From positions 3,355,404-3,419,403 of the forward strand of contig CAJFCJ010000007.1 of assembly GCA_904063045.1 (NCBI GenBank): a stretch of DNA of 64,000 bases. Reading direction: 5' to 3'. This stretch comes from Dimorphilus gyrociliatus (lineage: Eukaryota; Animalia; Annelida). The notes under the pieces were generated by a model. It worked only from the letters and a program-made list of their open reading frames with translations. It ran no database searches and was not told the origin of the DNA. The position numbers were made by a program, and so were the translations under genes. The first letter of the stretch is position 1. Every line of letters begins with the position of its first letter. Positions 3,798 to 62,043 of this stretch are shown piece after piece.

Positions 3798-5990
3798 ATG
3801 GAGGTTTATACGAATGGTGAAATTAATGGACATGACGAATTTGATGAAGAGGATGGCGAACCGTTCGATGCAACCATAATCTATAATCCGGATGGTTCTG
3901 CTTACATAATTGAGGCGGACGATGATGATGATGAAGACCTTCTTCAATTGCCAAAGCAGGATGGTAGCATTATCGTTAAAAAGAAAGCTCCTTTGCCGGA
4001 TGATGACGTCTCCATTCCGCAAATCGCTTCCGCTCTTTTCCTCCACAGGTCGAACACCACATTATATAATACGCTATTCTCCCGTAGGACACCTCCGCCG
4101 ACGCCTACTATGCATTCATACCGTGTTTATGACGTTCGGCATCCTCCTCCAAGAATAGACAACAGAACAACTAACCTTCCTAACGTACCGGTAACGGTGC
4201 CAACTAGGCCTATCCTAATGTGCTTCATATGTAAAATGTCGTTCGGCGTGAGCAAGTCGTTTATCAGTCACGCGATCGGCGAACACTCTATGGACTTGCT
4301 ACAAGCCGAGGAGGATATTCTGTCACAAACCAATTCGTCCGCCATTATACAGGCGGTCGGAAAGGACAAAACTCCCTTAATGTCCTTTTTGGAACCTTAC
4401 TTTCCGCCACCTCCCCCATCAACATCTCCTATAAGCGATGTTGAATCATCAGCCTCATCTGCCAATTCACCACCGCCCTCAGCGGCGGTTACTTCGCGTG
4501 CCATGCCACCTCTGTTAGCCGCCGCAGCGGTAGCCAGCTTCCCGCCTCCAATGCCTCCGCCTCCATCGATGGCCGCAATTGACCTGGCTACCTTATCGCC
4601 ATCGAGGAGTTCATGCAAGACGCTCAAGTGTCCCAAGTGCAACTGGCACTACAAGTATCAGGAGACACTGGAAATTCATATGAAGGAAAAGCATCCAGCC
4701 GACGGCGAGTCGTCGTCGTGCGTCTATTGCGTCACTAAAGCCGCTCATCCGCGTTTAGCTAGAGGCGAAGCTTACACTTGCGGCTATAAACCGTACAGAT
4801 GCGAAGTTTGCAATTATTCGACGACTACAAAGGGAAACCTTTCGATTCACATGCAAAGTGATAAGCACATCAATAACATGCAGGACTTACAAAATGGTTC
4901 AACTCCGGCACCTCCACCAACTACCGCACCGTCAGCCCCACCCACACCCCCTTCTTCTCTGGCCACATCATCTACGACAAACCAAGCAACTTCTTCGAAT
5001 CAAAGTTCAGAGAAGAATAAATCAAAGCCAGTTTGGAGGTGCGATGTCTGCCAGTATGAGACCAACGTCGCTAGGAATCTTAGAATTCACATGACGTCCG
5101 AAAAGCACACACATAATATGATGATGCTGCAGCAATCAATGCGTATGGCCCTGCCTCCTCTCCTTTTTCCGCCCACTACAGACCCCTATTACTCAACTCC
5201 CCTTTTAGCCTCAACGACGGCCATGGTTGAACCATTACCGGACGTATTCGAATGCTGTGTCTGCAATGTTTTTGCAACTGACAGCGTCGAAAGCTTACAC
5301 GGTCACATGCAATTGGATAGAACAAGGGTTAATGGCGCTGATGCTGAATTTGTAAGCGTCGTTGCAGGCCAACACACCTGCTCCCTTTGTTCTTACAAGA
5401 CGCCGCTTAAGGCCAACTTCCAACTGCATTCGAAAACCGACAAACACGTTCAACGGCTTCAGTTAGCCCTACATGTCCGAGAAGGAGGTCCGGAAAATGC
5501 CTGGAGAGGCAAGTACGTCAACGTATCTAATCCGGTACAAGTCCGATGTTCAGCCTGTGACTTCTATACTAATTCATTACATAAATTGCACGCCCATTCT
5601 ATGACACCCGCCCATGGGGCGGCAGTACGAATTCTACAGCATGTTCAAATGGCTGAAAGTCATGTGCCGGCCGACAAACGACTCTACGTTTGCCCAGTTT
5701 GTTCCTATTCAACAAGATCTAAGAATAAAATACTACAGCATTCCCGAACTCCTCAACATGCTTCTAATTTACAAGGCAGATCGGAGGACGAATTGGGTAG
5801 TGTTTTACGAGTTCGCCAAGCGGATGACAACAATACAGGTGAGTGGTGCTAATCCTGACGACAATCAGGCCTAAGGCTAGGTTAATTACTGCCGCACCTG
5901 AGCATTGATTGTGTTTTTACGTTGTATGCTCGCTTTAGGGAAAAGTTTGAGTTGCCGGAAATATCGTTATATAGCGTCATCGAAAGTACA

Positions 5991-6041
<51 letters not shown>

Positions 6042-9000
6042 GCATATAAATATAAAATATATATGTTATATAACTACGAATATATATATAATTTGTTATA
6101 TAACGTATATAGTTGCGTATGACGTGCGTCAATTTAGGCAATTAGGAACGTTCAAAGAGTTGGGTTAAACGTGCGTTAACAATAGTGCGGCGTCGATGCG
6201 CCTATCTATATCTATAGATGAGAAATTACGAGCACTTTATGAATTTACGATGCAGGTGCGCAAAATTTCGGCCTAGACTTTTAATGACACATTCAGTAAT
6301 TACGCTGCTTTCTTATCGAAATGGCGCCTGAGGCCTAATTAAAGCCTTCTGCGAGTGTGTTGTTTGAGAGCAAAGTTCGAACAGGAACGATATTTAGTTG
6401 TAGTATACGGTATGTCCTCTTACTTTTTTTTTTTTAATTATTTTTTAATTTTCTAAACCTTTTAACTTTAATAGAATAACATCCTCTTCCACCTTTCCCA
6501 ACCCCCTACCCTTAAGCTGCCCCATTTTAGCCTATATACTCTCCATCAACCATATTTTCCCCACTCCCTGTTCCCTCTTTTCTCTCTATCTCTCTCTCTC
6601 TCGCTTGCTCTCTCTACACGCTTCTTAGAGCAGATGCTGAAATCGATGACGTCACGCGGGCGTTGTGTGTGCGATATTGCAGAGCGCTGCGCAATAATGT
6701 CCAATCACCATTACGGCCCTTTAAAGGCGAAGAGCGATAAACGGTAATGGCGTTTGGACGGCGTTTAATCCCTTCTACCGCGTAACGGCGTTGTGTGCTT
6801 GGCTGCCCCAATCAGTGACGGCGCGTTGACGTGGCTGCTCTACTGCAATACTGCAATACCGCAATAGAGATAAGCAGACTACGAATAGCCCCCGCGTTTA
6901 ATTAAGAACACTAGCGCTCAGTACGATTCGGCACTCTGTCGACCGATAAGCGTTATCTGAGCCGAACCGTGCTTTATGGCGGGGGCTGCTTACAATTAAG
7001 GGCGCCTGCTATTCAGGTCATCCGTTCGCCGCTTGTTTACACAAAATGCGATGCGTGCTGGCGTTTTTGAAAGGCGAGACGTTTGCGCGAAAAGAAGAAC
7101 GCTTTTTGCCCTCTCGACGAATGTTGTAGCTTATTTACATACGGCCAATAACAGCTGTGTATTCTCATTATGGTTTGATCCGCCTGCCAATTAGCATTTT
7201 ATTGAACCGAGCTGAAATTTTATTTCAATTATAAAAGCCGTACGTATATTGTACAATATTAAACTTTAATACAAAGAATATATACAATATATAGGTATAT
7301 ATCATCGTGTCTTCATACCAATATAATGTATATACTGTATGAAGATACTTGTATATTAACTGTATATACTTCTTTCCATATCTATATGAATGCTTACGAT
7401 ATCCATATCTATACATTCATATAGATATATTCAAGTTAATATATAGAATATGTAACTTGTATATATTATATATAATCTATTGATATATTCAACTTTTCCC
7501 CTCCGACTTTCTTCATTAACTATATAATATAAGAAATAAATTTAAATACAATTTAAATATCGTACGTCTTAAAGAGTATAGTGTACACTTTATATGGTTC
7601 ATTGTGTATCTTTTACTATACACTGTACATACTGTTTTAGTGCGCCAGCGCACATATGTCGGCGGCATTCGTCTATATAACACGACTATTCACTTTGGCA
7701 CGTTTTTCGTTTTACAGATCGGGAATCTCAAGAAGAATGTACGCCACCTGGCGACGATAGAGACAAAGGTATGATTTCGTACCCAGTAGGCCTTAAAAAA
7801 TGTATACAACTATATAGATTGTACATATGATATACATTCATACTTTATACATCTATATATATATATATATATATATATAGTTGTATATAAGAGCGTTTAT
7901 TAATAAGCCGTAAAAGTTGACTGCGGCCCCCAAGATCAAACGGTAACGCTAAAGACGCTCGCTAGCTAATTAGCCTACACCTCATTAGGCGGCTCTGATT
8001 AGCGTGAGAGTTTAGGCGTCGGCCTTAGCAATTAACTCGACGAGTCGGCTTTTCTTTTTCCTCCCCGAGTTTGGCCGGAAGTAAGACGGGCGCCATGTGG
8101 CCGCGTAGCGCCATGTTTGTTAATCATTGATCGTAGATTAGTGTTACTGTATGGCGAATCGTCAGCTGCTCCAGTATAGTTTTATATATATAATTTCATA
8201 GATATACGTATGAAAAATACACATACGTACAATAGCACTTGTAATTATTATTTATATAGATAAAAATTTTAAAAAACAGATAATTTTTATTCCTAACAAT
8301 TTTCTCTAGTGCCAAAAAGTGCTTTCGTGTAATAAATAACAGTATTATTTCTATATAATTGCTATAAGAAAAGCAATATACTTATAGGCCTATCTTCTCT
8401 CAATATATATATATATATATATATAAATATGTAGGTATGTGTGTGTGTGTATGTACATACGTACGTTTTATGTGAATGCATATGTATGTGTGTATGTGTG
8501 TTTTGGTGTGAATTTTATCTATTGATGTGTATATATGAGTATTTTGATATGAATGCATTTTGAGTAGGTAGGTATGTGTACTACTACTATTTGGGATGGG
8601 TTAGGTGATTTCTTTCAATCTCTGTACCATTACAAGCCTTAACCTTAACCCTTTTTTCTCTCTCTTTCCCCTCTTGCTCACCCACTCTGCCCCCCTCCCC
8701 TCCAACCCCCCCCCCCTCTCTTTTTTACGTATTGGAGTTCGCGCCGTTATAGACCATTAACTGTTTAATGTACACTACTACTTTCTCCCTGCGTCTTTAT
8801 AACATCCACAATAGAGGGCGCTTGAATCGAAAGGAAAGTCGTCTTTTCGTTTCGTATACTTTTTTTACGGACGTTCTCTTATCTAATACGAGATGTTCCT
8901 TATCGATCTATACGATTGCGGCCGCTTCAAGTCGAGTATTAGCTATCGATCGGCCGCAACTATATAAAAGTCATAATGAAAACACTTTCTATCAATTTTC

Positions 9001-12000
9001 CCGCCGTTTTTTCCCTTTAACCCCTCTCCATTCTTGTGTTTATCACTAACCATATCACTAGCGGATTACTACCGTTGCCTCTAATGCTTTTTAACTACTC
9101 TCCCTGAAAAACGTGTTTACAGTTAAACTCTTGATAGAAAGATATATTTAGTGTTATAATCGGGTTCCCCCCTCCACTTCCATAACTTTTTCTCCCCACC
9201 CCGTCCCTTTTGCCTTATAAAGCAGCGTATATAGAAAACAATCGTATTGATACTCAAATTGGGTGGCGGCGCCGCCATCAACCGAGTCATTTGCATGTGC
9301 ATAGAGCCGCAGCCTGCTTTCCATATGAATAAGACTGGCCTGAGTTCGAACGCTTGCTTTTGCTCGGTCGCCAGTGTCTTAAGCGCCTAGCTCAATTGTT
9401 TAACGACGATCTAAGGAATTCTCGTTCAAACAAACATTCAACCGATCGCCCTCTTCCATTTTAAATACAATTTATTTTATGAAAAAGAAGACACTGGCAA
9501 AATCATTTTACCTATTAAAAACTTATTAAATAGGATACCTCTCATCTACAGATGCTAGTAAGTTCTATCTATACCTTTTACTACATATATCTATATATAT
9601 ATATAACTTTGTGCATATATATATATATAGTATGGATCTATGTATTAATATGTACAAGTGTATTTAGATTGTATATAATTGATATAAAGTATTTGAAATA
9701 TTTCTCTACGTATAATTAATAATCGTTAAACGTGTAACGTATGCATTGTATGAGTTATGCATTATTCGTGTTCTTAAGAATGGAGAGAAGATTGTCTAGG
9801 TTAGGGTAATGTAGGCATTGAAATCGCCCATTTCTACCCCTTGGTCCGATTAGTATCCAGGGAAAAGAATGTTATCTCGACACCTTGACGTCTTTTCTAA
9901 TAGACGGAACAAATGAAATTTAAAAGAAAAAAAAATAAAAAAAAGAGTAAAAAAACTAGACGAAAGTGATGACGACGACTCAGACATCTGAATTGGTGAC
10001 GCTTTTGTTGATTTTTTATTCAACAATCACCTTGTTTTTTGGTCGCTAAACTCAATCAACGAAAGAGAATCCGCCCCGCGTTCATTTAGTGTTTAGTAAG
10101 CTTCATGTCTACCGTTCAAATTAGGTCAGCGCCATAATAATAAAGCGAAGCATACACCTGTATAATATAGGCGATCGCGCGCGCATTGGCGTTTCGGTTG
10201 GCCTATACAAATGGCGGTTTTCTTTCTTTATTTTTTCTCAACCAATCTCAGTTGATTCCGTCTACTGTGTACCAGTTGATCAACTTTCTATATATCTTCA
10301 CTTACTATCTTGTCACACGCCGTTTTCGCTCCGTGGGAAAAATATTGGGAAAGGAAACGGTGAAGAGGGAGTGGTAGCGGTGTCCGTTGACCGATAGATA
10401 AGTCAAAAAGAGAGAGAAAGATAGAAAGGAAGAAAGAGAATAGGAATAATTCTACAAAAAAGGAAACGGATTCGTCGCCTTTAGTTTTTTTCGACTTTCG
10501 CTTTAATAGCGCAGCGTCGTCGTCGTCGTCACCGACCGACTCATGCCCTTCTCGTGACGTCAGATGACGTAAGTAAACAGGACTGATTGGACGAGGCCAC
10601 GTTGATTACATCACGGAATGTATTGTCTCTTGAATAGGTGCTTTGTCTAGGGCCGACTCTCGCTGTAATTCGCCGCCGATGCGTGAGTGCTGCTTGTCAC
10701 TGTTGGTAGGGACTGAGAGGGGGACGAGGAAAGATAATTAAGGGACTGGGAACTGTAGTTTTTTATCAAAAGGCCGCGAGACGAGAACGATACAACAATA
10801 GATTTAATACCATTTAAAAAATTCTTCAATACATTAATCTCTCTTAAACAACGATATTAAATAGTAAAAGAAAAAAATAGCCGAATCGGATTTTATCAAC
10901 GTTTTTAATTAGGAGATAAATTATGAGTTCGAATCTACGCAGATAACAACGACGGAGGCCTAACGAGCTACGAGAACGAAGTGGTCAATGAAGACGGAAT
11001 GCGACCGCGGACTGAAGAAGAGGACGAGGAAGGAGTTATCGAAGCTCTAGAGGCGGCCGAACAAGGTAAGCCTGGCACGTACATCTAATATGGTAGGACG
11101 AACGCGGACAATAGTTGACGGGTTAGGGCGTCTAACGGCTAGAGATTCTCAATTGAAAGAGTAAAAAGGTTGCTATATACTGTACTCAAATAACGTACAT
11201 AGAGTAATATATATGTACGATTTACATTAAAAAGGGTATGCGTGTTTAATGTGGTACACAATTTAGATGAAAAAAAAGCATAGCGACGTCTATTGTCTAG
11301 CTCGGTTAAGCCGGTCGAGTCCGGTGCAAGGAGAGGTCAAGCGCAACTAGCCGGGCCTCTTTTCTTCTTTTCCCTTTTATTTGGTCCCCGCCGTTCTTTT
11401 GACTAAAGGGGGCAGGGGGGGGGGAGCGGAGAGGGGGGAAAAGCGGCGGTCAAACGCGAAAAAATTAATCCGCGCCGCATATGCAAAGCATCTCGACGAT
11501 GGCGGCGCCTCGGCGTCTGTCAATTGAAGCGTTTTTTTTTTTGGCGCGCAAATCATTGAGAGTGATCAGTGAGCAAACGTAATTACGGCGGCGTTCTGTT
11601 GCAGCAACAAAGGAAGGCGTTACGGTCGACGAGCAGGACGAAGATGATTGCAAATGTCATACGTGTTCCAATACGTTTCCGACGCTCGACGCCCTCTACA
11701 ATCACCAAAACGAATTGGGCCATTTGGAACTGAAGCAGACACCTAGGGGTCCTGGCTACCTGTGCTGGAAGAAGTCGTGCAATCAGTATTTCTCAACCGC
11801 TAACGCTCTACAGGTCCATTATAGGGAAATTCACGCCACACCCACCGCCCAAAACTCTTCGACCAGTAGGCGTCACGCCTATAAATTCCGATGTTCCCGA
11901 TGTTCCTTGGCGTTCGTTACTAGGGATAAACTACAACTTCATCACACTTATCACGTGATTAGAGCAGCAACTAGGTGCCCTGTTTGCGACAAGAACTTCC

Positions 12001-14957
12001 GTAGTATAGGCGCCTTGCGCAAGCACGTTGATAACAGTCATTTAGATAAGATGAGTGACGAAGAGATAGCAAAGTATCGGGCCACTATAGCTGAAGTCGC
12101 CCCGCTAATCGGTTTGAAATTAACCGACGATCCGTCGGCTAATAACGAGGATATCAACGCCAATTCAGTTATTACGCAAGACGCCTCCTATTCGGATCCT
12201 GCTTGTAAGTACAAGTGCCACCGATGCAGAGTCGGCTACGCACGCCAATCGGCGCTCGTAGAACACAATAAGAGTGCAGAACACAAGCGTTCAAATAGTT
12301 CAGTTTCTACAACTTCCGGTAGTAGTACGCCGACTTTGGCGACTACGGCTACTACTACTACTATAACCGGTACTACTCAAGAATCCGAGTCTTCCGCCGA
12401 TGAAAAATTTAACGATCCGTCAAAACCGTTCAAGTGCCATGTCTGTGTGGAAGCCTTCGCGCAGAGGAACAATTTGGAGGTGCACGAAGGTTCCAATTCG
12501 CACAAACAGCGTGTAAAGGAGGAGGAGAGCGGGAGCGAACCTCCTATTGCCCCTCTTGGCTGGAACTTCAACGATCCGAATAAACCTTACAGATGTAATT
12601 TGTGCAAAGTATCATTCGCCAATTCGCCAAATTTTGACATACACAAGAGATCCGTGCTTCATATGAAGCACATCTCCAGATTACCTGATTACATTAATCG
12701 AAACTGCTGGCAAAGCGACGATGTCGTATTGGAAACGCCTGATGGTAAAATATCTGCCGAAGATCTTATAGAATCATCGACAAATACCATAAAAAAGGAA
12801 GAACAGATATCTTCACCCCTTCCATCTACCCTTCCAACTGCTAATCCAACGGCCACTTCTCTTCCATCAACTGTTATACCAAATCAGAATGCTATTTCTG
12901 GTATAAATACAGGGAACAACGACGAAATCAACCTAAAAATGGCTGTTGCTAAGAAGAGAAAGGACTGCCTAGAGAACAAGGAAAACAATACTCCCAAAGC
13001 TTTCACGTGTTCCCGGTGTTCGTCTGTTTTTAAGACGGCAGATAGCTTGGAAAAGCACGAAGGCGGCGAATGTCTTGGGCCACCAATAGTGAAATTGGGC
13101 CGAGTAAAGCCGGCCTTACAACGTCATCTCCTCGAATCATTTGGCTTCGAATGTGTCATGCAGTACAATGAAAATCAGAAGAGGGAGGTTCTAAAACCTT
13201 GCCCAGATGAGGAGACTGTTGGTAAGAAACCACCAGAATTACTAGAAAAAAGAACATGTTCAAAATGCAATAAGAACTTTTCCTCCGTTTGGGTGCTAAA
13301 AGCGCACGAAGAAGAAATTCACGAGAATCTAGTTCCACACGATATTGTTCAAAAAGTGGCAACTAAATTTAGGTCGGATTATGATAAGAAACAACCGTCT
13401 TCCTCTATGCCGAATGAAAATCGATCTTCCGGAACGCCTACTCCCACCGCCCTACAAGAGGAGAAGATTCTAACATCAACTAGTTCTTCCGGGTTTTCTC
13501 AGGCGTCGATTAAGGATGAGATGCCCAACGTTAGCTGCACTGATATAGCTAGCCAAATGATGCAGATGCCTATGCTTATGCCATTTGCAGGAATGCCCTT
13601 ATTTATGCCACCAATTTTACCTTATCCTGGTATGGAATTGGCCTATGCTGCTGGTTTGGGGCCGACCTCGAACGCTGCGGCCATCTTCGATCCGTCTTCA
13701 AACGCCAAGCAGCAAGCGGCCGCCGCCCAACTGGCGACTTCTAATCCGAAACGGGCGCGAACCCGCATTAACGACGATCAATTAAAAATACTCAGAGCTC
13801 ATTTCGACATTAATAACTCGCCAACCGAGGCGCAAATCGAACGAATGTCTAGAGAATCCGGATTACCGCCCAAAGTGATTAAGCACTGGTTTCGTAACAC
13901 GCTCTTTAAAGAACGACAGCGTAATAAGGATTCACCATATAATTTTAACAATCCTCCTTCAACAACCCTGGATTTGGCTGAATATGAAAAAACTGGAAAA
14001 ATCAAGAGTGAGGCTACAGCTAAGAATGAACATTTAGCAAATAGTGAAAATATGAAATCGATCGAGAAGGACATTGATTCTCAAGCTGATGTAGAATCGG
14101 TAGCTTCATTTTCGGAGAGCGCTGTCAGTTCGGCGCCGTCTACCCCCGTTCCACCACAACCATCAAACGAAATTATGAACGCGTTAACTCAAGCCAATAT
14201 AGCTAAGGCAATGGCGCCTTTGACACCGGAAATGCTTATGCAAGTTACTAGTATGACGTCTCAGGATGGTACAATCCCTGGTTCGAGTACAACTCCTAAA
14301 AGAGCTAATAGAACAAGGTTAGTTAGCTCCATTTCATTCTTAAATGGAATTAATCCGACTTTTCTAACCCTATTTTTAACCGTTAACCGCTGTTTTTATA
14401 TCCCTTCTTTTTCGCCTTTGGTTATAAAAACAAAAACGTTTTCGGATCGATAAATTCGTGCAAAATAACGAGATTAAGCGAGTTTGATAGTATTACAAAG
14501 GAAAAGATCGGAAAACAGGCAAAAAAAAAATCAAGGCGTGCCCTTCTCTACCACCATATTCACTTGTTTATATTCCCGTATCAGATATTGATAACAGATG
14601 AATAAATCGTACCCAATAATGTGTATGTTATTCTATATACATATATATATATATATGTATATTTAGAATATATACTTAAATAAATGGGTATGTAAACCAG
14701 TTGACATTTTAACTGAGGTCATGTATTTCTAAAGTAGAGATGCCTATATGTAAATATGAGAGCGAATTTTATATGTATATAGCTTGATAACCTAAATAAA
14801 CACACACATATATATATATGTAGGTATATATATATATATATATATTGAGCATGTGTAAAGGATGCTTAATTGCATCCTTTACTCTACTGAAGTGAACATA
14901 CATGTAAATATATCTTCTATACAAATGTATATATCTATATACAGAAAGAATATAATA

Positions 14958-14990
<33 letters not shown>

Positions 14991-17900
14991 TTATATATAT
15001 TAGTGCGCATATGTGTAATAATTGTTTTGAGCGCGCTGACTAAAACAAATATTGATTTTTCTTATTGATTGCTCTAAAATTTACTCATAAAAAAACTTAT
15101 TATGCATGCTGCAACTGTTAACGTGTTAGATTCGGACATCGAAAAATTACATAATAGGTTATAGAGAGGTTGCGCAATCTTGTTTAGTGAGGCCCCCTCG
15201 GTTCGGTCTAGATACGCCATTTACACAGTGATTAACGCCACTCAAACCCGGCCTATGTAAAGGCGGTTGATTATATAATATTCTCAGACTTACGTAACTT
15301 ATTCAACGCGTTTATCCTCAGCGCATACATTTGTTAATTATTCGCTTATTTAAATTCTTGCCTTTTACCTCCCTCTCTCTCTTCTAATTATCTTTCATCT
15401 TAGGAATCATTTCTCATACAGATTTACTGATCATCAAGTAAAAACCCTTCAAGAATACTTTGAGCAAAACGCCTATCCAAAGGACGACGAATTGGAACAC
15501 CTGTCCAAGACTCTTCAACTATCGCCTCGGGTTATTGTCGTCTGGTTCCAAAACGCTCGACAGAAGGCGCGCAAGAGTTACGAAAATCAACCACCTTCGT
15601 CGTCGGAAAAGAACGCCACTAATAGCCATTCTTCATCTTCAAATGAGGATGAGCGTTACATAAAAACTCCAGGCTCCAATTATCAATGTAAAAGATGCTC
15701 AACGGTATTCCAACGCTATTACGAACTAATTAAACACCAGAAAAGCGTTTGCTTTAAAGAGGAAGAGACACCATTATCAAGTTGCAATAATAGCAATGAC
15801 GGAACTAGTTCATCACCTCCCTCTAAGGCTGATGTGAGTTCGTCATCCAACGGCAGAGATCAACTACAACAACAACAATCGCAACCACAACAAAAGGTTT
15901 ACGATTGCGAAAAATGTTCACAATCATTCGGAGACACTGAATCGTGGAGGGAGCATCAAGCTCTCCATATAGCTACACCTGTCTTTACACCAGCTTCTTT
16001 CGATTCGGCATTCGCTATTTTACAAAACGTTGCGAAACACGCCGAAGCAAAACAATCCAAAAGGAAAAGTGACGACGATCAAGACTCAAATAATAGCGGT
16101 GAAAGTTGCCCTTCTAGGGATAAACGTCTACGAACAACAATTTTACCGGAACAGTTGGATTATCTCTATCAGAAATACCAGGCGGACAGTAATCCGTCTA
16201 GGAAACAGTTGGAATCGATTGCCGACGAAGTGGGCTTGAAGAAACGAGTTGTACAAGTTTGGTTCCAGAATACGCGAGCCCGCGAAAGAAAAGGTCAGTA
16301 CAGAGCGCACGCGCAACTCATACATAAGAGATGCCCCTTTTGTCGAGCCCTGTTTAGAGCTAAGACGGCCCTAGAATCGCATTTAGCTACGAAACACCCA
16401 GAAGAAATGGCTAAAGGCGAAGTTAATGTTGATAATATTCCTGATTGTCCTATTGAACCTCCAGCTCTGAAGGACAAAGAATCGCCAACGCCAGCATTGG
16501 ATATGACCAAGCTTTTATCTAATCCGTACAACGTTCCATCGAATCCTGTACTATTCCCACCTAGCCAAGCGGCATCTTTTAAGAAAATGTATGAGGAACA
16601 TTTAAACAAATTTATAACGGAAGCATCACCCGCCGCGACAATATCGTCTGGTGTTGGGACGTCGACACCTTCGTCAACTTCAACGCCATCGGCTCAGACA
16701 CCTATCAGCGCGTCGTCTAAAGTTGACCGCCGGAAATCGGCAACACCTCAGAGGGCTATCCCAACAGTTCCAACTGTTTTAGAGGACCCTTCCGCTCCTT
16801 TGGATCTTAGCGCTAGGGCACCATCAATTCCTGCTTCACAAATTACACCTATAAGGCATTACGATGATGATAATAGATCGGAAACGTATAGCGAGAGTAC
16901 AACGGATGGTGTTGATTTTATGGACGAAGCATCAAATCCGTCGTCACCACCAAGTTCACATATGGCACATGGGCATGGGGGCTCAAGTGGCGGTCTATCA
17001 GGAGGCTCGCATCGACCCGCTAAAAGATACAGGACCCAGATGACCTCGTTACAAATAGGCGTCATGAAATCGCTATTTGATTGGTATAGAACGCCTTCTA
17101 TGTCGGAATGCGAACTATTAGGATCCGAGATTTCCCTGCCTAAAAGAGTTGTTCAAGTCTGGTTCCAAAATGCCAGAGCTAAGGAGAAGAAAGCTCGTCT
17201 AGCTCAGGGTCAACCAGTTGACGAGCCGCCAAGAACACCGGACTCGTGCAGCCTTTGCAATTTTACGTTCACCCACAACTACAGCGTTCAAGATCATATT
17301 TTCACTAAACGTCATATACAGAACGCTATGAATCATATGCGAAAACAATTGGAAAGCGAAGGTGTCCGTGACACGTCGTTACCTAAGGTCGAAACGCCAA
17401 CAGGAAGTACCAATGCTCGAAGCAAACCCTCGAAATTGGAGATGGGCGATAACGAAAGTACGTAGTTTATATTTATTACGTAATACAATACGAGAGGCTA
17501 ATCTTTTTTAAATGTTTTCCCCTTTGAACTTGTACCCATTATAGAAAGCAGACGGACCGGAAATACAAGCGGAACAGGTGGAACCTCGCCCTTGGTTTCT
17601 GCCGGTTTAAACGCCCAAATGATGTCGATGTTAGGAATGCCCGGATCCGACCTAATGATGCCCTTGTTTTTACCAAGTAGTGCTCCCGGGTTTCCCTTAA
17701 CTGCTGGAGGTCTAGCGCCTTTTATGTCCGGTTTAGCGCCTGGTAAGTGAATAACGAAAGGGAAATTGTTCTTCGGATAGGCAGATAGAGTTAGGGGGTT
17801 GAGGAAGACGAAGAAAAAAAAAAGCGAACCTGATATAAGCAAGAAACGCATTGACACTTTGATGAATGTACATTAAAAGTGACAATTCAGACTGTGCTGG

Positions 17901-49722: not shown

Positions 49723-52700
49723 ATGTCTAATCCGTTGACAGAGGAACGTTTAAATAAAATAAAAGGTATTCATTCAAAAAAATTGAATTTATAGTTGTTG
49801 TCATCCTCTTCTATTCTGTTTATTCAGATAGCGCAGCATCTTTTCTAGAGTCTTTTGGTGTTGAATTCACAAAAAGCTATGCATTATCTTTAGTGATTTC
49901 CGCTCAGGAAAAGGTTCAAGTTTACGAAGAATTAAGAAAGTTATTATACAGAGACGTAAGTTATATAACTATTTTATGAATTGTTATTCTTATTTATGAT
50001 CTATATTGTTATTAATATTCCTCTTTTTGTAATAATGAAAGTAATAAAACAATCATAAATTTCCCAAGCACGATATAATAAATTCTATGTTTTTATTGCC
50101 ATTGGAAATAGTTTGGAAGCGTACCAAGAAAGAATCTATTCTCCGGTTACGTTTATATAAAGGAAGGCGAAGGTCCAGGTTCATTCTCCGATAAATGGCA
50201 AAGATTGTTTGTTGCCGAACAACTCGACTATAATTTGGCTATTTATAACTCAGAAGAGGATTTTAAAAATACTAAGGACAAACCGAAAAAAGTTATTAGC
50301 TTAGCCGGTTATCAATTGACAAAGGAGCCGAGAAAAAGTTATGAGAAGGTGGCGAGAAAGCTATCAAACTCCTTAGGTAGGAATTTCTATTCAATATGTC
50401 GAAAGCGGTCGACTGAACATCGTCCTTTGAACAGGGTTAGGAGACGACGGCATACCCATAAGCTTTTCGCCCTTTAGCTGGGCGTTGACCCATGATATTA
50501 GGGACAACTACGTCATGCAAATGCATAAGGGAGCTAGTGTAAGGATACATATATATATTTTTTAATTTTCGCCCCTTTAATTCAATCATACGTAACCTCC
50601 TTTTCATAAAAAAACCGTTACTAATGAAAAATACATAAAAAATGGTGAACGTCACCCCATCTTTTTTAGATTTTTCATACTTTCTTTTTCAACTTCAACT
50701 AACTCTAGACCATAAAAATATTCAATAGGCCAAGTTTTGTAGTTGTATAAGAGGGCCGACGGTTGAGCCTGAGGATGTTGGAAAAGCGGAATACGATAAG
50801 GATGGAATGAAATGGATAACGACCATCGACAGATGCGTAAGACGCGTCAAAGGTATAATAACAATAATAATTAAAGTGACGTTAAACAGTTTTTTTATGT
50901 AAAAACTTTTTTTTATCTATTCAATTTTTATTTACTAATAAAAAAATGTTTTTTGAATAAAAGCGAGGGATTTAAAGAGTGTGACTGGTCGGGCTTTTGA
51001 TATGGCTGTTAAGAGGGCCATTCAAACCAATTCCGAATTAAAAGGTTTCAAAACTGATGGTACTGAAGAGGAAATTCTTATGGATTTACTTGCTGAATTA
51101 TGCGTTAAACCAGTCTTTGAAGAAGCTTGTAAAGATATTGATGCACCTGGAGGAATGAGAGCTTTTATATATTATAAAGTAGGTTTAATTAGCTTTTATG
51201 AAATTAATTAATATTAGTTTTTTATCAATAGATGAGAGGAGTAACTTTCCAAGCTTTAAAGAAAATGCTAGATGAAGCTTGGTCAGCTCTGAAGCAAACT
51301 GTCGATAAAATGACCGAAAAATTAGAGGAAAAGATATCTTCATTATACAACAAAATATCCAATATTAAGGAGGATGGAAAGGCTAAGATAAGAGGTTCTT
51401 TACTGATATAATACTTTTTAAAATTTAATTTGATATCTCATATCTTATCTTTTAAAAAGTCGACTCAATTCAATATTTTATCTTAGTTATTTTTTTACAT
51501 AGGAGCGGTCACTGATAAAATAAGTGAAAAATTGAATGAAGTCGTTAAACCAGCAGTTAAACCAGTTTTTGAAGTTTTTAATAATCCACTTAAACAAGGA
51601 CTTGTCGAAGTTCGTAATGTTCTTAAAAGTGAAATTGGAAAGTTAAAGAAATTAACTAATAATGACCTAGATAAAATCCCTAGAAGTAAAACAAATATGG
51701 CGGGTTTTAAAAAATTAACTGCAGACACTCTTAAGGCTTTAGAAGCCCTTAAGAAAAAGTTCCCGCTATTATTCGAGCACGTGGAAGTTATGACTTTAAA
51801 GCAATCTATACAAGATGTTCTTTACAGAGTGAGTATAATATATTAAAACCCATAAAATTCCAAACGTTCCATTGTACTCTTTTTTTTTTCTTTTTTTATT
51901 TACAACATTAACAGACAGCCGACGCCGTCGTTAATACTATCGAATTAAGATTGAAAGATAACGCCGAAGCCAATTCAGATCAATTATTAAACGACACTCT
52001 AAAGGTAACAATAAATTATTATTAAGTGGGAGGAGTGTACATTTATATATATACAGTATATATATATATATACTGTATGTATGAGTGTACATTAACAAAA
52101 AAAGAATAAAGAACATTTTCGTTTCCCGCCAAAAACGAACATTCTTCTTTCATGTTCGTAAAAGAAAACATATTAATGTAGCAACTTTTCTTGTCACCTA
52201 TTAAGGAATTCGACTACGATGCTGAAATAGTACAAGCGCAATTCTTAGTCAGCGTTATGCAATTGGTATTCGTCGGCGGCTTCAAAAGAATCGTTAACCC
52301 GATAGTTGAACCGGTAAATATTACGCTTACTTCGAATATATTAAATTTAATTTTTTCCCTTTTTTCCCCTCTTTTCATCCTAAATCCTTTTATAATATAG
52401 TAAATAATTAAAAGTAAACTCTAGCTAGACTTTTTTCAATTGTTTAAATACGAAAATACTTGTATTATTATTAAAAAAACAAAACCAATATGAATATAAT
52501 TATCATATGTCTGCGTCTTATCAGATTTTGGACACCTTAACCGGTTTTATACCGGACGAAGTTGAAGAATTTGTTAGCATTCAAGCCTTGTACGACGATT
52601 TTATCGAACTTTTCGTATCGGAACCAATACATTCAGGTATGATTAATTAGAGGATGGGTTTTTTTTTCTATTGATAAGATATAGGCCTAATGTTGTTGTT

Positions 52701-52982
52701 ACGTTTTCAGTTGTATATCAAGAATACCCGTCCGCTAAGCCTAGGAGAAAAGGTGAGAAAGCCGCCGAAGAGGAGGCCGTCGGAGAGGAAGCCGCCGAAA
52801 AGGAGGCCGCCGGAGAGGAGGCCGTCGGAGAGGAAGCCGCCGAAAAGAAGGCCGTCGGAGAGGAAGCCGCCGAAAAGAAGGCCGTCGGAGAGGAAGCCGC
52901 CGAAAAGAAGGCCGTCGGAGAGGAAGCCGCCGAAAAGAAGGCCGCCGGAGAGGAGAAAGAGATGCCATTAGAGGAAATTTAA
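49723..52982 (+). CDS. Niban/FAM129-like PH-domain protein, about 649 aa, 12 exons
   Basis: Exons 49723-49765, 49828-49955, 50112-50376, 50435-50538, 50729-50852, 50964-51178, 51232-51394, 51503-51828, 51915-52004, 52206-52313, 52525-52636 and 52711-52982 are GT-AG and in phase (1950 nt). Motifs recall Niban: KWQRLFVAEQLDYNLAIYNSEEDF..PKKVISLAGY, KWITTIDRCVR, GTEEEILMDLL, EFDYDAEIV. Confidence 0.8.
52755..52949 (+). repeat. Coding minisatellite: 13 x 15-nt units with a 30-nt higher-order repeat, encoding (EEAAE-KKAVG)n
   Basis: Units of the form RAG-RAR-GCC-GYC-GRA from 52755 to 52949. The 30-mer GAGGAAGCCGCCGAAAAGAAGGCCGTCGGA is repeated identically three times. Confidence 0.95.
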
Positions 52983-53421
52983 ATTTTATAGTATGATTCC
53001 TCTCTTTGACATTAATAAGATTTGAAAATTGGTTTCATCCAACCAATCCTTCTCTCTCCTTTTTTCTTTCTCTCTATCTCTTTCTGTTATATTTTATCCC
53101 CTCCCCCTTTTTCTATCTTTTTACCTATTATGCTCCTGCCTTCCCCCACCTCTTTCCCCCCCCCCTCACCTACCCCCCGCCGCTCCTGCTCTATAACGAA
53201 ACTACATTAGCATAGAATTAATTGTTAATTACTAATTGATAGCAATCAGAATACAAAAAAAAATCGTTAGACGCTTAATTTAAAGACGATCGAAATAAAT
53301 TGAATAACAACATAATAAAACTCTACATTTTGAAAAAATGACAAAAAAAAACAGATGATAAGACAATCAACTAAAAGATGAATATAAAAGAGAAAGGTGA
53401 CAGGGAATAATGATCTTAATT

Positions 53422-56400
53422 CTAGTAATCCGTGAAAGCGTTACATAATCTCTTCCTTAGTAGAGTAAGTCTTTGAGATTTCCTTCCGACCCTGGGGGTA
53501 AGTTCCAGATTGAAAGCCAAAGGTGGACTAGCTGTGCTATGCCTATTAAAATTTCGTCTTTCTTTAATCAATTCGCAAGCGTCTTTCATAAATTGTGGCG
53601 TAGGCCTACTTTTGGAAGCATTCAACCAAAATGTTTGAATAGGGCCTTTACCCTTAACGTCTGTAGCACCACGACTAATTATCGAATAATCAGACGCATT
53701 TTTAGCTTCCATTAGAGCCTCTGCAGTAGTTGAACTTATATGAGCTTTTGACGCTTCACCCGTAGATTCCATTCTAGACGCTAAATTGACCGTATCACCA
53801 TAAATGGTATAGAATCTTCTCTCGCTACCAACTAAGGCCGCTATGCAAGGACCGGTACTAATTCCTATACGCAACTCGGCTCTAGCTCCATTTAATTGTG
53901 TCATTGAAGCGGCCTGAAACCATAATAGCAAATCAATGGCTGTATCGGCAGCAATGGATGCATGACGATCCGTTCTCTGTGGTAGACCACTAACATACAA
54001 ATGCATCTGTCGAATTGTATCAACGTGGTAGACTTTGTGACGACTCGTTACCTCGTCGAGTATGTCAAAGATGATATCCAACAGTTCTATCAAATCTGCC
54101 GGATGTCTTACTCTGGCGTTTAAAGCTGAGAAATTGCTTATATTCACGAAACATATTGTAGCCGAACTGAAATATTCAGGGGGGACGTCATCTTCGCTCA
54201 AAAGCCTCTCGACACAGGCCGACGGCATCATACGGGACAATAGTAATTTTGTTCTCGATTTCCCTTCTTCTAAATCTTTCATGCGTTGTTCTACTACGGT
54301 TTCCAGCAGTTCGTTATACCTTTGCATATTTTCAATTGACTCGGCGGTTGATTTCGTTCCGCTAATCATATCTAATGTCTCTTTCAATTCAGCAACTTTT
54401 GGTCTTCTATTCTTCTTCTCTCTCCAGCACCTTCTCATTATTCCCAAAAGACTGTACGGAGTGTCTTCTTGTAGATGATACCTAGCAATTTCCGGTCTGC
54501 AAAGGTATCTTTTCCTATCCGCCACCTTTCTAACAATTTCTTCATCGGTAAGCATCCCGAAGAAAGGTTTAGCGCAAAACGCAACTTCTTGGCAGATGAT
54601 ACCAAAGCTATAAATATCTCCCGCCTGAGTTCCGTTGCCCGTCTCCAACGACCTAAGTAATTCGGGAGCTCTCCAAACCCTATAATCAAATTCGCAAATT
54701 GTAGATCTTGACCTAGCCTCCTCCAAACCGTAGTCGCTAATTCGAATATTCCATTGTAGGTCTACAAGACAACAATGACTCGACAGCCTTCCGTGGCAAA
54801 TCAGATCAGTCGAATGTAAATAGCCTAAACCTTGTACAAGATTACGTAAAAAGGACAATTTTAAATGAGCATCAATAATTTTATATTCTAAGATTGTACT
54901 GAGACGTCCCTTCTGACAGAATTCGTATATTGCGCAGGCGTCACCAGATACTGAACTTATGCCGTAGAACGTTGCCAAATTATTGTGTCTTACGCGAATT
55001 AAGTCGTTCTCAACCCAATTATTTTCAATTATGGACATGGAACTTACTCCATGAATAGTGTCTGCCGTCACCCATAGATTCTTCGTTTGATAAAAATAAT
55101 AATTTGAATAGTTGGACCATTTTAGGCTTTCTCTTTTCGTATCGTAGAAAATCATTGACATGGAAGCGCCGAATATAGTACTGGCGGAAGTACCCATATT
55201 TTTATCATATGTATCCGATTCTTGCTCCTCCCCACGTCCCATTATAATTGCTAATAGTCTACGTAACCTTGCCCCTATGGAAACCATCTCCCGATTTTCT
55301 TCCATTTCATTTAACTCGTCGGCATTTAATATATCCGCTTGTATAAGATTTACGGAGTCAATTTTCCAAGGTGGGTCATCTTTTCCAGTCGATTTGGGAA
55401 TTCTTTCAAAAATCCATAGGATGATTCGACTCCTAAGTAGGAAAATCAGAATACAAATACCCAAAATAATTCCAACTAAAAAGGAAAAAAATGATGATTT
55501 ATCCTTATTCGAAATACACCCGCCCATTTCCCAATCATGTATACAAGAGGGAGACGGAAGAGAGGCATTCCATTCCTTAAATCCTTTCTTCTTTGTAGGA
55601 CTAATTTTATACGTATTCCTTAATTGATCATATGTAAATATCTGATACTCTTCCGCCTTAATATCGTCCTTTTCATAAAATCTTAACATTTGAAATTTTT
55701 TGATTACCCTAATAGAATCGACAAGATTGTAACTTGTTGGCCCTCTAGCGGATAACCTAGAAAATAATTTTGAATTCCTTAAACTGTTCAAGTCGTCGGC
55801 AATTTTCATTAGCTGACAAATAAAATCGGAAGCTTGATAGAGTGAATTTGATAAAGGGAGATTAATTTGGGGATTATTGTCATATTGAGAAGAGAGTATA
55901 TTCCCTCTATCGTGACGTTCGTTGTTGATTGAATAGACCTTATTAAATGACCAATTAATAATTAAAATTTTCCTTAAATCAATTCCAGAAATTGGTTTAA
56001 TCCCTTCGCCCATTAAATTTAGGTGTATAAAGGTAAAATGATTATCTTTAACTGCTGTAGACGCCCTTAAAACTTGATAGAGTAGTCTAGAACCTCCACA
56101 AATTAAAATCATTCGGCAATCCTTTTTAATAGAATTTAAGGTTTTTTTTAATAGGTTCACACTATTCTTCGATTTATCAACGACATCTCTATGGATTAGT
56201 ATTAATCCTTTCTTATAGAATCTTCTTAATTCTTTGTCGTCGTTGTTATAGTTACTCTGCTCGCACAACTCTTTATCTTCGAATAAAGAGAAACGATTCC
56301 AGCCTATATCTTTCATAAATCTCATAAAAACTGTAAAAAAGTACGGTATCGTAGGACCAATCTTAATAAAATCCCTTTCGTACAAGCCTACAGTTCCTGG

Positions 56401-56817
56401 AGCGATAGATACAAAAGGGATTTGTAGATATTTAAATAGAGGTGTCAAACGATAAGCTGTTCCACTTATAGGTAATCCAATAATAATATTAGCTTCATCC
56501 AAAGATGTGGAAGATAACAGTTTAGTTTTAATATATTTCATCGATTCTACGGAAGACCAATTCTTTGAAGAATGAACCAAAACCGTATACCTTGTCTTTA
56601 GGTTATCCTTATCAAAACAATTACTAAATGGGGAATAAGCTGCTAAAGTTGATATTCTATTTTTCAAATAGTTGGGTCTATCAACCATTAGGAAGATATT
56701 TATGCTAACATTTCCATATCCATATGTCCTTGTCATAATATTATTATTAGAATAATCATGATTACTCTTGGATGCTACTTTTAGAGTGTTAACATAGATT
56801 ATGAATATAAAAAACAT
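53422..56817 (-). CDS. Receptor-type guanylate cyclase-like protein with degenerate catalytic site, 1131 aa, apparently intronless
   Basis: Signal-like N-terminus, ANF-receptor-like ectodomain, TM FFSFLVGIILGICILIFLL, kinase-homology domain (HGRLSSHCCLVD..ISDYGL, GDIYSFGII), hinge coiled coil (NMQRYNELLETVVEQR) and cyclase domain (SGLP, RIGISTGP, GDTVNLASRMES, RG..DVKGKG). Confidence 0.93.
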   Translation of the reverse strand: MFFIFIIYVNTLKVASKSNHDYSNNNIMTRTYGYGNVSINIFLMVDRPNYLKNRISTLAAYSPFSNCFDKDNLKTRYTVLVHSSKNWSSVESMKYIKTKLLSSTSLDEANIIIGLPISGTAYRLTPLFKYLQIPFVSIAPGTVGLYERDFIKIGPTIPYFFTVFMRFMKDIGWNRFSLFEDKELCEQSNYNNDDKELRRFYKKGLILIHRDVVDKSKNSVNLLKKTLNSIKKDCRMILICGGSRLLYQVLRASTAVKDNHFTFIHLNLMGEGIKPISGIDLRKILIINWSFNKVYSINNERHDRGNILSSQYDNNPQINLPLSNSLYQASDFICQLMKIADDLNSLRNSKLFSRLSARGPTSYNLVDSIRVIKKFQMLRFYEKDDIKAEEYQIFTYDQLRNTYKISPTKKKGFKEWNASLPSPSCIHDWEMGGCISNKDKSSFFSFLVGIILGICILIFLLRSRIILWIFERIPKSTGKDDPPWKIDSVNLIQADILNADELNEMEENREMVSIGARLRRLLAIIMGRGEEQESDTYDKNMGTSASTIFGASMSMIFYDTKRESLKWSNYSNYYFYQTKNLWVTADTIHGVSSMSIIENNWVENDLIRVRHNNLATFYGISSVSGDACAIYEFCQKGRLSTILEYKIIDAHLKLSFLRNLVQGLGYLHSTDLICHGRLSSHCCLVDLQWNIRISDYGLEEARSRSTICEFDYRVWRAPELLRSLETGNGTQAGDIYSFGIICQEVAFCAKPFFGMLTDEEIVRKVADRKRYLCRPEIARYHLQEDTPYSLLGIMRRCWREKKNRRPKVAELKETLDMISGTKSTAESIENMQRYNELLETVVEQRMKDLEEGKSRTKLLLSRMMPSACVERLLSEDDVPPEYFSSATICFVNISNFSALNARVRHPADLIELLDIIFDILDEVTSRHKVYHVDTIRQMHLYVSGLPQRTDRHASIAADTAIDLLLWFQAASMTQLNGARAELRIGISTGPCIAALVGSERRFYTIYGDTVNLASRMESTGEASKAHISSTTAEALMEAKNASDYSIISRGATDVKGKGPIQTFWLNASKSRPTPQFMKDACELIKERRNFNRHSTASPPLAFNLELTPRVGRKSQRLTLLRKRLCNAFTDY

Positions 56818-56964
56818 GATAAAATAATAAATGGAGAAGAGAGAGAGAGAGAAGGGAAAGAGAAGATATGATAACTAATTCATCAATTCTTGAGAATTGT
56901 CAAAAAAAGTCTATTGTTGTTATTGTTGTCCTTAGTTTTCTATATATATATAGATATATATATA

Positions 56965-57006
<42 letters not shown>

Positions 57007-57166
57007 CATACAACTACACAAGCAGTGGTATATACTTTCATTCATACATATATTTGAATATTTATATATTCATGTTTACATCTTCATTGTATATAAATAA
57101 TATTAAATCTAAATAAAAGTCATAGGCTAGGTTTTAATAGGCTTTATTAATTCAACAGCCTACTCT

Positions 57167-57320: not shown

Positions 57321-58350
57321 ATGTTCAAGAATACATATCAATCGGGCTTTCTTTCAATTCTCTATTCAATAGGACAGAAACCACTACAAATTTGGGAGAG
57401 GAAGGTAAGAGAAAAAAGCCGGTTTTGCTTCTATATACATATACTAGCGTGCTTAGTAACACGACTTAGCAACGACCGCACGTGCATTTATTACTATTTA
57501 ATAGATGTTAATTGACTAATTATAACTATTAACTAGGTACGAAATGGACATATTAAAAGAATTACAGACCAGGATATTCAATCTCTAGTTTTAGACATTG
57601 TTGGAACAAACGTTAGGTATGCATCATTCCACTTTCCTTCGTTTCATTCTTATTTCTCTTCTTTCCTTTTATACTTTAATTTTATTACGACTATTCCTTC
57701 TCTTAGTCTCTTAGTCATTCTCTCTCTCTCGCTCTTTCTATGTCATTTCATTTCTACTTCCTAATTTGAGTTCATTAATATTCATACTTCCCTTTACAGT
57801 ACAACTTACATCACTTGTCCGGCTGACAATAAAAAGACGCTTGGTATAAAACTGCCTTTTCTAGTGATGATAATCAAGAACCTAAAAAAGTACTTTACCT
57901 TTGAAGTTCAGGTAAATAACGAATATTTTTGTCTCAAATGAATAAAATATAATACCAACCTTTTTCTCAGGTGCTAGACGATAAGAATGTTAGACGACGA
58001 TTCAGGGCCAGTAATTATCAAAGTACTACCCGAGTAAAACCATTCATTTGCACTATGCCAATGAGATTGGATGACGGATGGAATCAAATTCAATTTAATC
58101 TATCAGATTTTACCAGAAGGGCTTACGGAACGAACTACATAGAGACACTTAGAGTACAGGTAAATAAATTGAATAATTTCTCTTCCTCCCCTTCAATCCC
58201 TTAAAATAAAATTCATAATTTTTTTGTTTCAAATAGATTCACGCAAATTGCCGAATCCGACGTGTCTACTTTTCAGATAGATTGTATTCGGAAGATGAAT
58301 TACCAGCCGAATTTAAATTATTCCTTCCCGTTAATCAACCAAAGTCATGA
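57321..58350 (+). CDS. CFAP20: Cilia- and flagella-associated protein 20 (Bug22/FAP20), copy a, 192 aa, 5 exons
   Basis: Exons 57321-57404, 57537-57616, 57800-57911, 57971-58159 and 58237-58350. Protein [28 protein letters not shown]|[10 protein letters not shown]...[37 protein letters not shown]. Confidence 0.97.
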
Positions 58351-61129: not shown

Positions 61130-62043
61130 ATGTTCAAGAACACGTTCCAAAGTGGATTCTTGTCTATACTCTACAGCATTGGCAGTAAACCCTTGCAGAT
61201 TTGGGATAAGAAAGTAAGTATCTCTTCATATGATGGGCTATAACAAGCGTATAGTTTGTCTATTAATGTATTATTAGTTTCCGTATTGTAAATACGTAAA
61301 CAACGCCTAAAAACTTTCAATTTGTTTTTACGAAAAGGGTGTATAGTAGGGATGGGAGATGTTCATTGTAACCATAGTAACTCTGTTGACATTTTCCAGG
61401 TTCGGAACGGACACATCAAGAGAATTACTGATAATGACATACAATCACTCGTTTTGGAAATTGTAGGAACTAACGTTAGGTAAGCGACCTGCTCCAGTTT
61501 TGACTTACTCTTACCAAAAAAAAATTCTTATGTTACCCTTAATATACTATAGCACGACATACGTCACGTGCCCGGCTTGCCCGAAAAAGACGCTTGGCAT
61601 AAAGTTGCCTTTCCTCGTTATGATAATAAAGAATTTGAAGAAGTACTTTACGTTCGAGGTTCAGGTGCTAGACGACAAGAGTGTAAGAAGGAGGTTTAGG
61701 GCGAGCAACTATCAAAGTACAACTCGCGTCAAACCGTTCATTTGTACAATGCCCATGAGACTGGACGATGGCTGGAACCAGATTCAATTTAATTTATCCG
61801 ATTTTACTCGTCGAGCGTACGGAACCAACTACATAGAAACGTTAAGAGTGCAGGTATAAATTGAATATTTACCGTTAATGTATACTTTAGATAAAATATT
61901 AGTAATTTTTGTTTGTCGATTTGCAGATACACGCTAACTGCCGCATTCGTCGAGTCTACTTCTCTGACCGCCTTTACTCGGAGGATGAATTACCAGCCGA
62001 ATTTAAACTGTACTTACCCGTACAACAGCAACAAAGAAAGTAA
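61130..62043 (+). CDS. CFAP20: Cilia- and flagella-associated protein 20, copy b, 193 aa, 4 exons
   Basis: Exons 61130-61213, 61400-61479, 61553-61853 and 61927-62043. Protein [28 protein letters not shown]|[15 protein letters not shown]...[14 protein letters not shown]. Confidence 0.97.
61368..61381 (+). promoter_or_regulatory. RFX X-box in CFAP20b intron 1
   Basis: GTAACCATAGTAAC is a full match to the 14-bp X-box consensus RTHNYYWTRRNRAC. Confidence 0.6.

Follow-up and report, generated by a model that had tools for sequence, protein, structure and literature searches.

Gene and protein layout

The DNA analysed here is a window of 64,000 nucleotides (nt) from contig CAJFCJ010000007.1 (assembly GCA_904063045.1) of Dimorphilus gyrociliatus, a miniature annelid (PMC10212961), and all coordinates are positions within this window. 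Its minus strand carries a receptor guanylyl cyclase-like gene, which consists of a complete, intronless open reading frame (ORF) of 1131 codons plus stop. We are highly confident that this is a real and intact single-exon gene, and that its product is a type I membrane protein of complete receptor layout, in which the cyclase fold has been kept and all three residues of the C1/alpha role have been lost. The gene and the regions of its product, with the evidence for each in brackets, are as follows.

53422..56817, minus strand: complete, intronless receptor guanylyl cyclase-like ORF, 1131 codons plus stop (ORF, Pfam, deposited gene model)
56767..56817, minus strand: residues 1-17, short hydrophobic N-terminus, putative signal peptide (inferred from sequence and hydropathy)
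55495..56766, minus strand: residues 18-441, ectodomain with 7 Cys and 4 N-x-S/T sites (sequence, Pfam)
55423..55494, minus strand: residues 442-465 (approximately), sole transmembrane helix (Kyte-Doolittle, 19-residue window, peak 3.0)
55000..55422, minus strand: residues 466-606, juxtamembrane region at the expected place of the kinase-homology N-lobe
54373..54999, minus strand: residues 607-815, kinase-homology domain, C-lobe and part of the N-lobe (PF07714, PK_Tyr_Ser-Thr, E 1e-27)
54181..54372, minus strand: residues 816-879, helical linker or dimerisation helix (aligned to NPR-A 785-840)
53620..54180, minus strand: residues 880-1066, class III cyclase-homology domain (PF00211, Guanylate_cyc, E 1.5e-40)
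53425..53619, minus strand: residues 1067-1131, C-terminal tail without family match (ORF, Pfam)

The reading frame is undamaged. None of the 1131 codons is a stop; each of the other five frames contains 51-111 stops, and composition-matched shuffles average 82. The amino acid sequence has diverged by more than 60% from any relative, and a frame that stayed open over this distance would need selection on the coding frame, because neutral drift at such divergence is expected to give dozens of stops. The initial annotation, which had been made from the DNA sequence alone, held that the gene is not a decayed pseudogene, and the intact frame bears this out. The deposited gene model has the same single exon and is annotated as protein-coding, with its start at Met28 (56736) and a length of 1104 amino acids (aa). 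It leaves out 27 in-frame codons (56736-56817, minus strand), which include the hydrophobic N-terminus; with a start at Met1, the protein would gain a putative signal peptide of the kind expected at the N-terminus of type I receptors.

The domain order is that of a receptor guanylyl cyclase: an ectodomain, one membrane helix, a kinase-homology domain, a linker and a C-terminal class III cyclase domain. A clearance or decoy receptor of the NPR-C type has a short cytoplasmic tail, whereas this protein has an intracellular region of 660 residues with kinase-homology and cyclase domains. Conservation differs along the chain. In the ectodomain, the match to the Pfam family ANF_receptor (PF01094) is weak, covering residues 99-264 (56026-56523) with 27.7 bits against a cut-off of 25.4, and a single-sequence fold model was uninformative (predicted local distance difference test, pLDDT, 37). 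The kinase-homology domain aligns to NPR-A from residue 609 onward only (NPR-A 558-781, 106 bits). Upstream of this domain, residues 466-606 aligned with neither NPR-A nor the Pfam kinase profiles, and neither the Gly-loop nor the VAIK Lys is recognisable there. The linker helix is well defined in an AlphaFold2 model of the cyclase region, with pLDDT >90 over model residues 2-33.

Active-site residues and the half of the site that is lost

In class III cyclases, the chain in the C1/alpha role supplies two Asp residues and, in guanylyl cyclases, also the Arg that precedes the specificity Cys by two residues, and the chain in the C2/beta role supplies the base-reading pair, an Asn, an Arg and a phosphate-binding Lys. 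Loss of either Asp abolishes activity. We compared the cyclase domain with that of human NPR-A (9bcv) by phmmer, and the alignment was gap-free and of high confidence over three motifs. The protein reads TICFVNISNF where NPR-A has TIYFSDIVGF, VDTIRQMH where it has VETIGDAY, and SERRFYTIYGDTVNLASR where it has LKMPRYCLFGDTVNTASR. The positions of interest in the domain are listed below.

54142..54144, minus strand: N892 (aat), first metal-binding Asp position (phmmer alignment, codon check)
54007..54021, minus strand: D933, guanine-specifying Glu position (54021-54019), through Q937 (cag), second metal-binding Asp position (54009-54007), with G936 replaced by Arg (alignment)
53806..53814, minus strand: F1002, Arg of the PRYCLFG motif (53814-53812), and T1004, specificity Cys (53808-53806) (alignment)
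53764..53799, minus strand: GDTVNLASRMES block, residues 1007-1018, intact, with transition-state N1011 (53787-53785) and R1015 (53775-53773) (alignment)
53644..53655, minus strand: KGKG, residues 1055-1058, kept (alignment), which we take, after adenylyl cyclase C2 (K1065), to bind phosphate through Lys in the C2 role

All key-residue substitutions named in the initial annotation were reproduced in this alignment, its codon assignments for N892 (54142-54144) and Q937 (54007-54009) are correct, and the transition-state Asn and Arg that it described as intact are N1011 and R1015. It had also proposed alignment with NPR-A, soluble guanylyl cyclase (sGC) alpha and beta and adenylyl cyclase C2, by which Asp residues in a shifted register might come to light. 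The alignment with NPR-A upheld the loss of both Asp. For residues 831-1075, AlphaFold2 with 60 homologues gave a model of pLDDT 93, whose closest match in the PDB is the GC-A cyclase domain, with a template modelling (TM) score of 0.89 (normalised to target) and a root-mean-square deviation of 2.4 Å. In the model, N892 ends strand beta1 and Q937 lies in the beta2-beta3 turn. A shifted register that hides the Asp residues is unlikely, because the alignment is gap-free and the modelled N892 and Q937 sit at the usual sites of the metal-binding Asp.

The residue pattern is unique in our comparison. When we read off the seven key positions in 187 matching cyclase domains, taken from the database proteins closest to ours, the canonical set D-E-D-R-C-N-R was found in 149 of them, and N-D-Q-F-T-N-R was found in this protein only. 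With five of the seven residues replaced, the chain does not carry the set of a homodimer-competent guanylyl cyclase. The homodimer should be inactive by the canonical two-metal mechanism, because both Asp and the PRYCLFG Arg are lost, so the protein probably makes no cyclic GMP (cGMP) alone. The inactivity as a homodimer predicted in the initial annotation thus agrees with the residues found, in particular with the loss of both metal-binding Asp.

The losses are divided unequally between the two roles. None of the three C1-role residues remains (N892, Q937 and F1002 stand in their places), and all three catalytic C2-role elements are kept (N1011, R1015 and KGKG 1055-1058), so that Asp loss goes together with retention of Asn, Arg and phosphate Lys, as in a half-site of the beta/C2 type. 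Similarity scores lean in the same direction. The protein scored 104 bits against sGC beta1 and 69 bits against alpha1, while a canonical mollusc receptor cyclase used as control gave 153.5 and 151 bits; against adenylyl cyclase, the scores were 63-65 bits for C2 and 48 bits for C1, with 94 and 85 bits in the canonical control. Among positions that are at least 95% invariant, those of block 1007-1018 are kept 10/10, against 35/54 over the whole domain. The initial annotation had stated that exactly the beta/C2-type half is retained. Asn, Arg, KGKG and the beta1-over-alpha1 bias support this statement in part, but it goes too far for base reading, where the specifying Glu is replaced by Asp and the Cys by Thr; a canonical base-reading pair (Glu/Cys or Lys/Asp) is not present on the same chain.

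The C1/C2 split can be illustrated by P0005, a protist-type two-domain cyclase, which we used solely for this purpose. In its domain 1, the Asp positions are taken by E and Q, with DTVNTASRMES and KGKG preserved; in its domain 2, both Asp are present and Asn, Arg and KGKG have been lost. P0005 had also been considered as a possible relative and was dropped as being of protist type. The GDTVN-ASRMES block has decayed where the C2 role is dispensable, namely in P0005 domain 2 and in the dead amphioxus receptor P0134. Taken as a whole, the residue pattern and the score asymmetry are suggestive, although not strong, evidence that a C2-type face has been retained, and the beta/C2-like bias is measurable but statistically marginal.

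Relatives and known systems

The protein stands far from other cyclases. An exhaustive HMMER search of 1.84 billion representative proteins, which gave 45,036 relatives, contained no orthologue; true matches level off at about 280 bits with 35-39% identity, over the kinase-homology and cyclase domains only, and zero relatives in this search matched the ectodomain. Word-index protein searches with the whole protein and with the cyclase region returned nothing beyond our protein and cyclases that were generic or distant. Those top matches that carry names come from insects (GC-D or retinal-GC2-like proteins) and molluscs (NPR1-like proteins). The highest score of all, 501 bits for P0030, was rejected as an artefact. 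In this protein of 2050 aa, one complete canonical receptor cyclase follows another head to tail, probably because a gene model ran tandem paralogues together, and this inflated its score. In the cyclase domain, the median identity of our protein to canonical domains is 38%, and canonical domains are 61% identical to each other. When trees were built, FastTree grouped the protein with divergent tardigrade receptors, but this grouping was gone under the site-heterogeneous model of IQ-TREE (LG+C20) and was treated as long-branch attraction. The IQ-TREE analysis placed the protein in no subfamily and did not group it with the mollusc cyclases that share its Thr.

Compared with known cyclases, the protein combines a familiar frame with an unusual site. 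First, canonical homodimeric receptor cyclases (NPR-A/GC-A, GC-C and retinal GCs) have the same domain order and are the best matches both in sequence (NPR-A, 138 bits) and in structure (GC-A cyclase domain, TM 0.89). Unlike them, our protein is only 35-39% identical over the kinase-homology and cyclase domains, has five of seven key residues replaced and an ectodomain without relative, and is encoded by an intronless gene. Second, sGC beta1 and adenylyl cyclase C2 likewise have no metal-binding Asp and keep Asn, Arg and the phosphate Lys, and a dead pseudo-symmetric site is predicted for our protein as for these. The design of sGC, with one active site and one pseudo-site, is established (PMC8196705). 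The architecture differs, being of the receptor type (ectodomain, helix, kinase-homology domain) and not of the type with H-NOX/PAS domains or twelve membrane helices, and base reading is by Glu/Cys in beta1, by Lys/Asp in C2 and, as predicted from the alignment, by Asp/Thr here.

Third, the nearest precedent within receptor cyclases is the pair DAF-11/ODR-1 of C. elegans, described as receptor cyclases that work as obligate heterodimers, with essential catalytic residues coming from both monomers (PMC5225109, PMC8045692). Chimera experiments support the nematode heterodimer model (PMC8045692), and a passage of the same paper cites Morton 2004 and Murayama 2013 for heterodimeric receptor cyclases. 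Judged by published description of the nematode pair, the likeness lies in a full receptor layout whose cyclase domain lacks part of the catalytic set. Our protein, in contrast, comes from another phylum without detectable orthology, its partner is hypothetical whereas that of the nematode proteins is known, and it has lost all three C1-role residues and altered the base-reading pair. Further C. elegans gcy genes were reportedly predicted as obligate heterodimers by Morton in 2004.

Some features of the site recur singly in other animals. The Thr at the specificity Cys is shared with the Gyc76C-like cyclases P0053, P0047, P0113 and P0109 of molluscs, which are spiralian like our species, and also with P0172. 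The members of this group are canonical at the other six positions; unlike our protein, the mollusc cyclases keep both Asp, Glu and Arg and so presumably work as guanylyl cyclases. Catalytic residues have also been lost sporadically, within an intact receptor layout, in the tardigrade proteins P0076 and P0157 and in amphioxus P0134. In the tardigrade proteins, the first Asp is replaced by His or Arg, but the second Asp, Glu, Arg and Cys are kept, unlike here. The amphioxus protein reads N-D-D-R-S-G-T, so that Asn and Arg are also lost and it is fully dead, which again differs from our case. In the acorn worm Saccoglossus, P0110 and P0068 have Asn replaced by Gln, or Arg by Ile. All five of these proteins are otherwise of normal length and align over the kinase-homology and cyclase domains.

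Function, origin and neighbourhood of the gene

The reading that we favour, and hold tentatively, is that the protein may serve as the beta/C2-type half of a catalytic heterodimer with an Asp-bearing receptor cyclase, its candidate partner being hypothetical. In such a dimer, the partner would give the two Asp and the Arg, and our chain would give Asn1011, Arg1015, the KGKG lysine and the altered base-reading pair Asp933/Thr1004. Of the two pseudo-symmetric sites of this dimer, one would be catalytic and the other dead, as in sGC, membrane adenylyl cyclase and DAF-11/ODR-1, and the orphan ectodomain of our protein would add a second input to the output of the partner. We count in favour of this reading the rare residue pattern, the kept Asn/Arg block, the score asymmetry, the retained fold, the open frame, the RNA-derived contigs confined to the ORF and the nematode precedent. 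A more elaborate form of this proposal is that of a dedicated beta/C2-type subunit joined to a receptor cyclase from the same genome that lacks Asn and Arg. Such a pair would form an asymmetric two-ectodomain receptor with a catalytic site and a regulatory pseudo-site, the Asp/Thr pair would shift the product away from cGMP, and the arrangement would have evolved independently outside nematodes; we consider this full scenario improbable. The idea of a half-site heterodimer is already established in nematode receptor cyclases, and the gain is incremental. However, if the protein is a working half-site subunit, the division of labour known from sGC and adenylyl cyclase would have arisen repeatedly within the receptor cyclase family and not in nematodes alone, and the annelid would offer a compact system for two-ectodomain control of one catalytic site.

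Several observations weigh against a catalytic role in a heterodimer. The base-reading pair is non-canonical, with D933 for Glu and T1004 for Cys, and the Asp/Thr pair was found in no relative among the proteins examined. Further invariant residues of the pocket are altered (K931H, G936R, Y939H, M1000R, P1001R and F1006Y), and the 35 of 54 nearly invariant positions kept here compare with 40-41 of 54 in bacterial adenylyl cyclases in the same alignment. The terminal branch of the protein measures 2.2 against a median of 0.33 in FastTree and 3.5 against 0.47 in IQ-TREE (LG+C20), about sevenfold in both. This divergence and the long branch would fit relaxed constraint after loss of catalysis, which is a serious rival explanation. 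In permutation tests, the unbroken run of kept invariant positions in the Asn/Arg block is only marginal (P ~0.05) and the clustering of changes is not significant (P = 0.11). Finally, RNA coverage of the gene is very low, with a depth of 3-5 versus 716 for the neighbouring gene CFAP20, and unspliced, and carry-over of DNA may account for the unspliced contigs.

Nearly as likely as the catalytic heterodimer subunit is a non-catalytic pseudo-cyclase, which would fold and dimerise, with itself or with active receptor cyclases, and take no share in catalysis. It could act as a dominant-negative, as a scaffold or trafficking partner, or as a cGMP-independent receptor. The replacement of five of seven key residues and of many other pocket residues is what this explanation leads one to expect, as are the low identity of the cyclase domain (38% against 61% among canonical domains), the branch of about seven times the median and a kinase-homology N-lobe that is likewise unrecognisable. 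Degenerate receptor cyclases are also scattered across animals (tardigrade P0076 and P0157, amphioxus P0134), and the retention of the Asn/Arg block, being only marginally significant, does little to oppose it. On the other hand, Asn, Arg, KGKG and the whole GDTVN-ASRMES block are intact here, yet the block has decayed where the C2 role is not needed, and a plain scaffold does not predict the asymmetry of similarity in favour of beta1 over alpha1. If this explanation is right, the gene would be a clear animal case of a receptor enzyme that became non-catalytic while its frame and fold were maintained. Whether it is a heterodimer subunit or a pseudo-cyclase, the label guanylate cyclase (Enzyme Commission number, EC, 4.6.1.2) needs qualification for this gene in annotation pipelines. 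Literature searches on guanylyl cyclases in D. gyrociliatus and on pseudo-cyclases yielded no paper.

The evidence for transcription comes from one public run that holds the sequence (X1, 2017). The run is RNA-derived, as its CFAP20 contig skips four GT..AG introns. For the cyclase gene, 53403-55067 is covered by five unspliced contig pieces with 100% identity to the window and a depth of 3-5, binned depth shows one further covered stretch near the 5' end (56496-56863), and coverage in the non-repeat flanks of the ORF is zero. These data point weakly to low-level transcription. The D. gyrociliatus genome retains many ancestral introns (PMC7854359), and the intronless state of the gene suggests an old retrogene or complete intron loss. 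Around the gene, we found neither a poly(A) remnant or tract nor a target-site duplication or flanking direct repeat. It is thus intronless like a processed pseudogene but lacks poly(A), direct repeats and stops, and its origin may be that of an ancient retrogene.

A third explanation, to which we give little credence, is a drifting lineage-specific copy, functionless or nearly so, for example an old retrocopy whose ORF is still open while the gene is being lost. An intronless gene in an intron-rich genome (PMC7854359), next to CFAP20 with its four introns, would fit such a history, and so would the absence of an orthologue or close paralogue from all of our searches, the extreme branch length and the very low RNA signal. 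Against it stands the frame, which is free of stops over 1131 codons (51-111 per other frame) despite more than 60% amino acid divergence, something that neutral drift would not be expected to leave. One can still make out every domain, the membrane helix and the residues that determine the fold; neither a poly(A) remnant nor a target-site duplication was found, and the deposited assembly annotates the gene as protein-coding.

The weakest explanation, which we regard as very improbable, is an autonomous enzyme whose homodimer cyclises a nucleotide with Asn and Gln as metal ligands and with a new base specificity through Asp/Thr (cAMP, cCMP or cUMP): Asn and Arg are kept and Thr at the Cys/Asp position does occur in class IIIb adenylyl cyclases, but both carboxylate metal ligands are gone, the PRYCLFG Arg is replaced by Phe, the class IIIb partner Lys is absent and mollusc receptor cyclases whose site is otherwise canonical share the Thr. 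The initial annotation had taken this Thr as a sign of class IIIb adenylyl cyclases, and here we depart from it. That class is marked by the pair of Lys and Thr together with intact metal-binding Asp; in our protein, the Lys position is occupied by Asp and both metal-binding Asp are lost, and the Gyc76C-like cyclases of molluscs carry the Thr in an otherwise canonical site.

The cyclase gene stands head-to-head with a gene on the opposite strand, defined by a spliced RNA contig.

57321..58350, plus strand: CFAP20 gene, with about 500 bp between its start codon and that of the cyclase gene

The four introns of CFAP20 are confirmed, of the GT..AG type and 59-183 nt long, and the depth of its contig is about 150-240 times that of the cyclase gene; the shared upstream region does not give the two genes similar coverage. 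A (TA)n microsatellite (56941-57010) lies within this region of about 500 bp between the divergent genes. No X-box/RFX consensus was found in the same region, and over the whole window there are 16 matches against 15 expected by chance. One exact palindromic match, GTAACCATAGTAAC, is located at 61368-61381.

Other observations in the window concern sequences beyond the 3' end of the cyclase gene. The 3' ends of the cyclase gene and a Niban2-like gene flank a tract (53080-53200, in minus-strand reading) that is rich in purines and in G and has long runs of G. Twelve tandem copies of a 15-nt unit (52722-52985, plus strand) occur in an ORF (52671-52982), where they encode an acidic Ala/Glu-rich five-residue repeat. 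Farther away, at 3798-17465 on the plus strand, there are three long ORFs of the zinc-finger-homeobox type with C2H2 fingers, the second and third of which also have homeodomains (ZFHX3-like); these three ORFs may be exons of one large gene.

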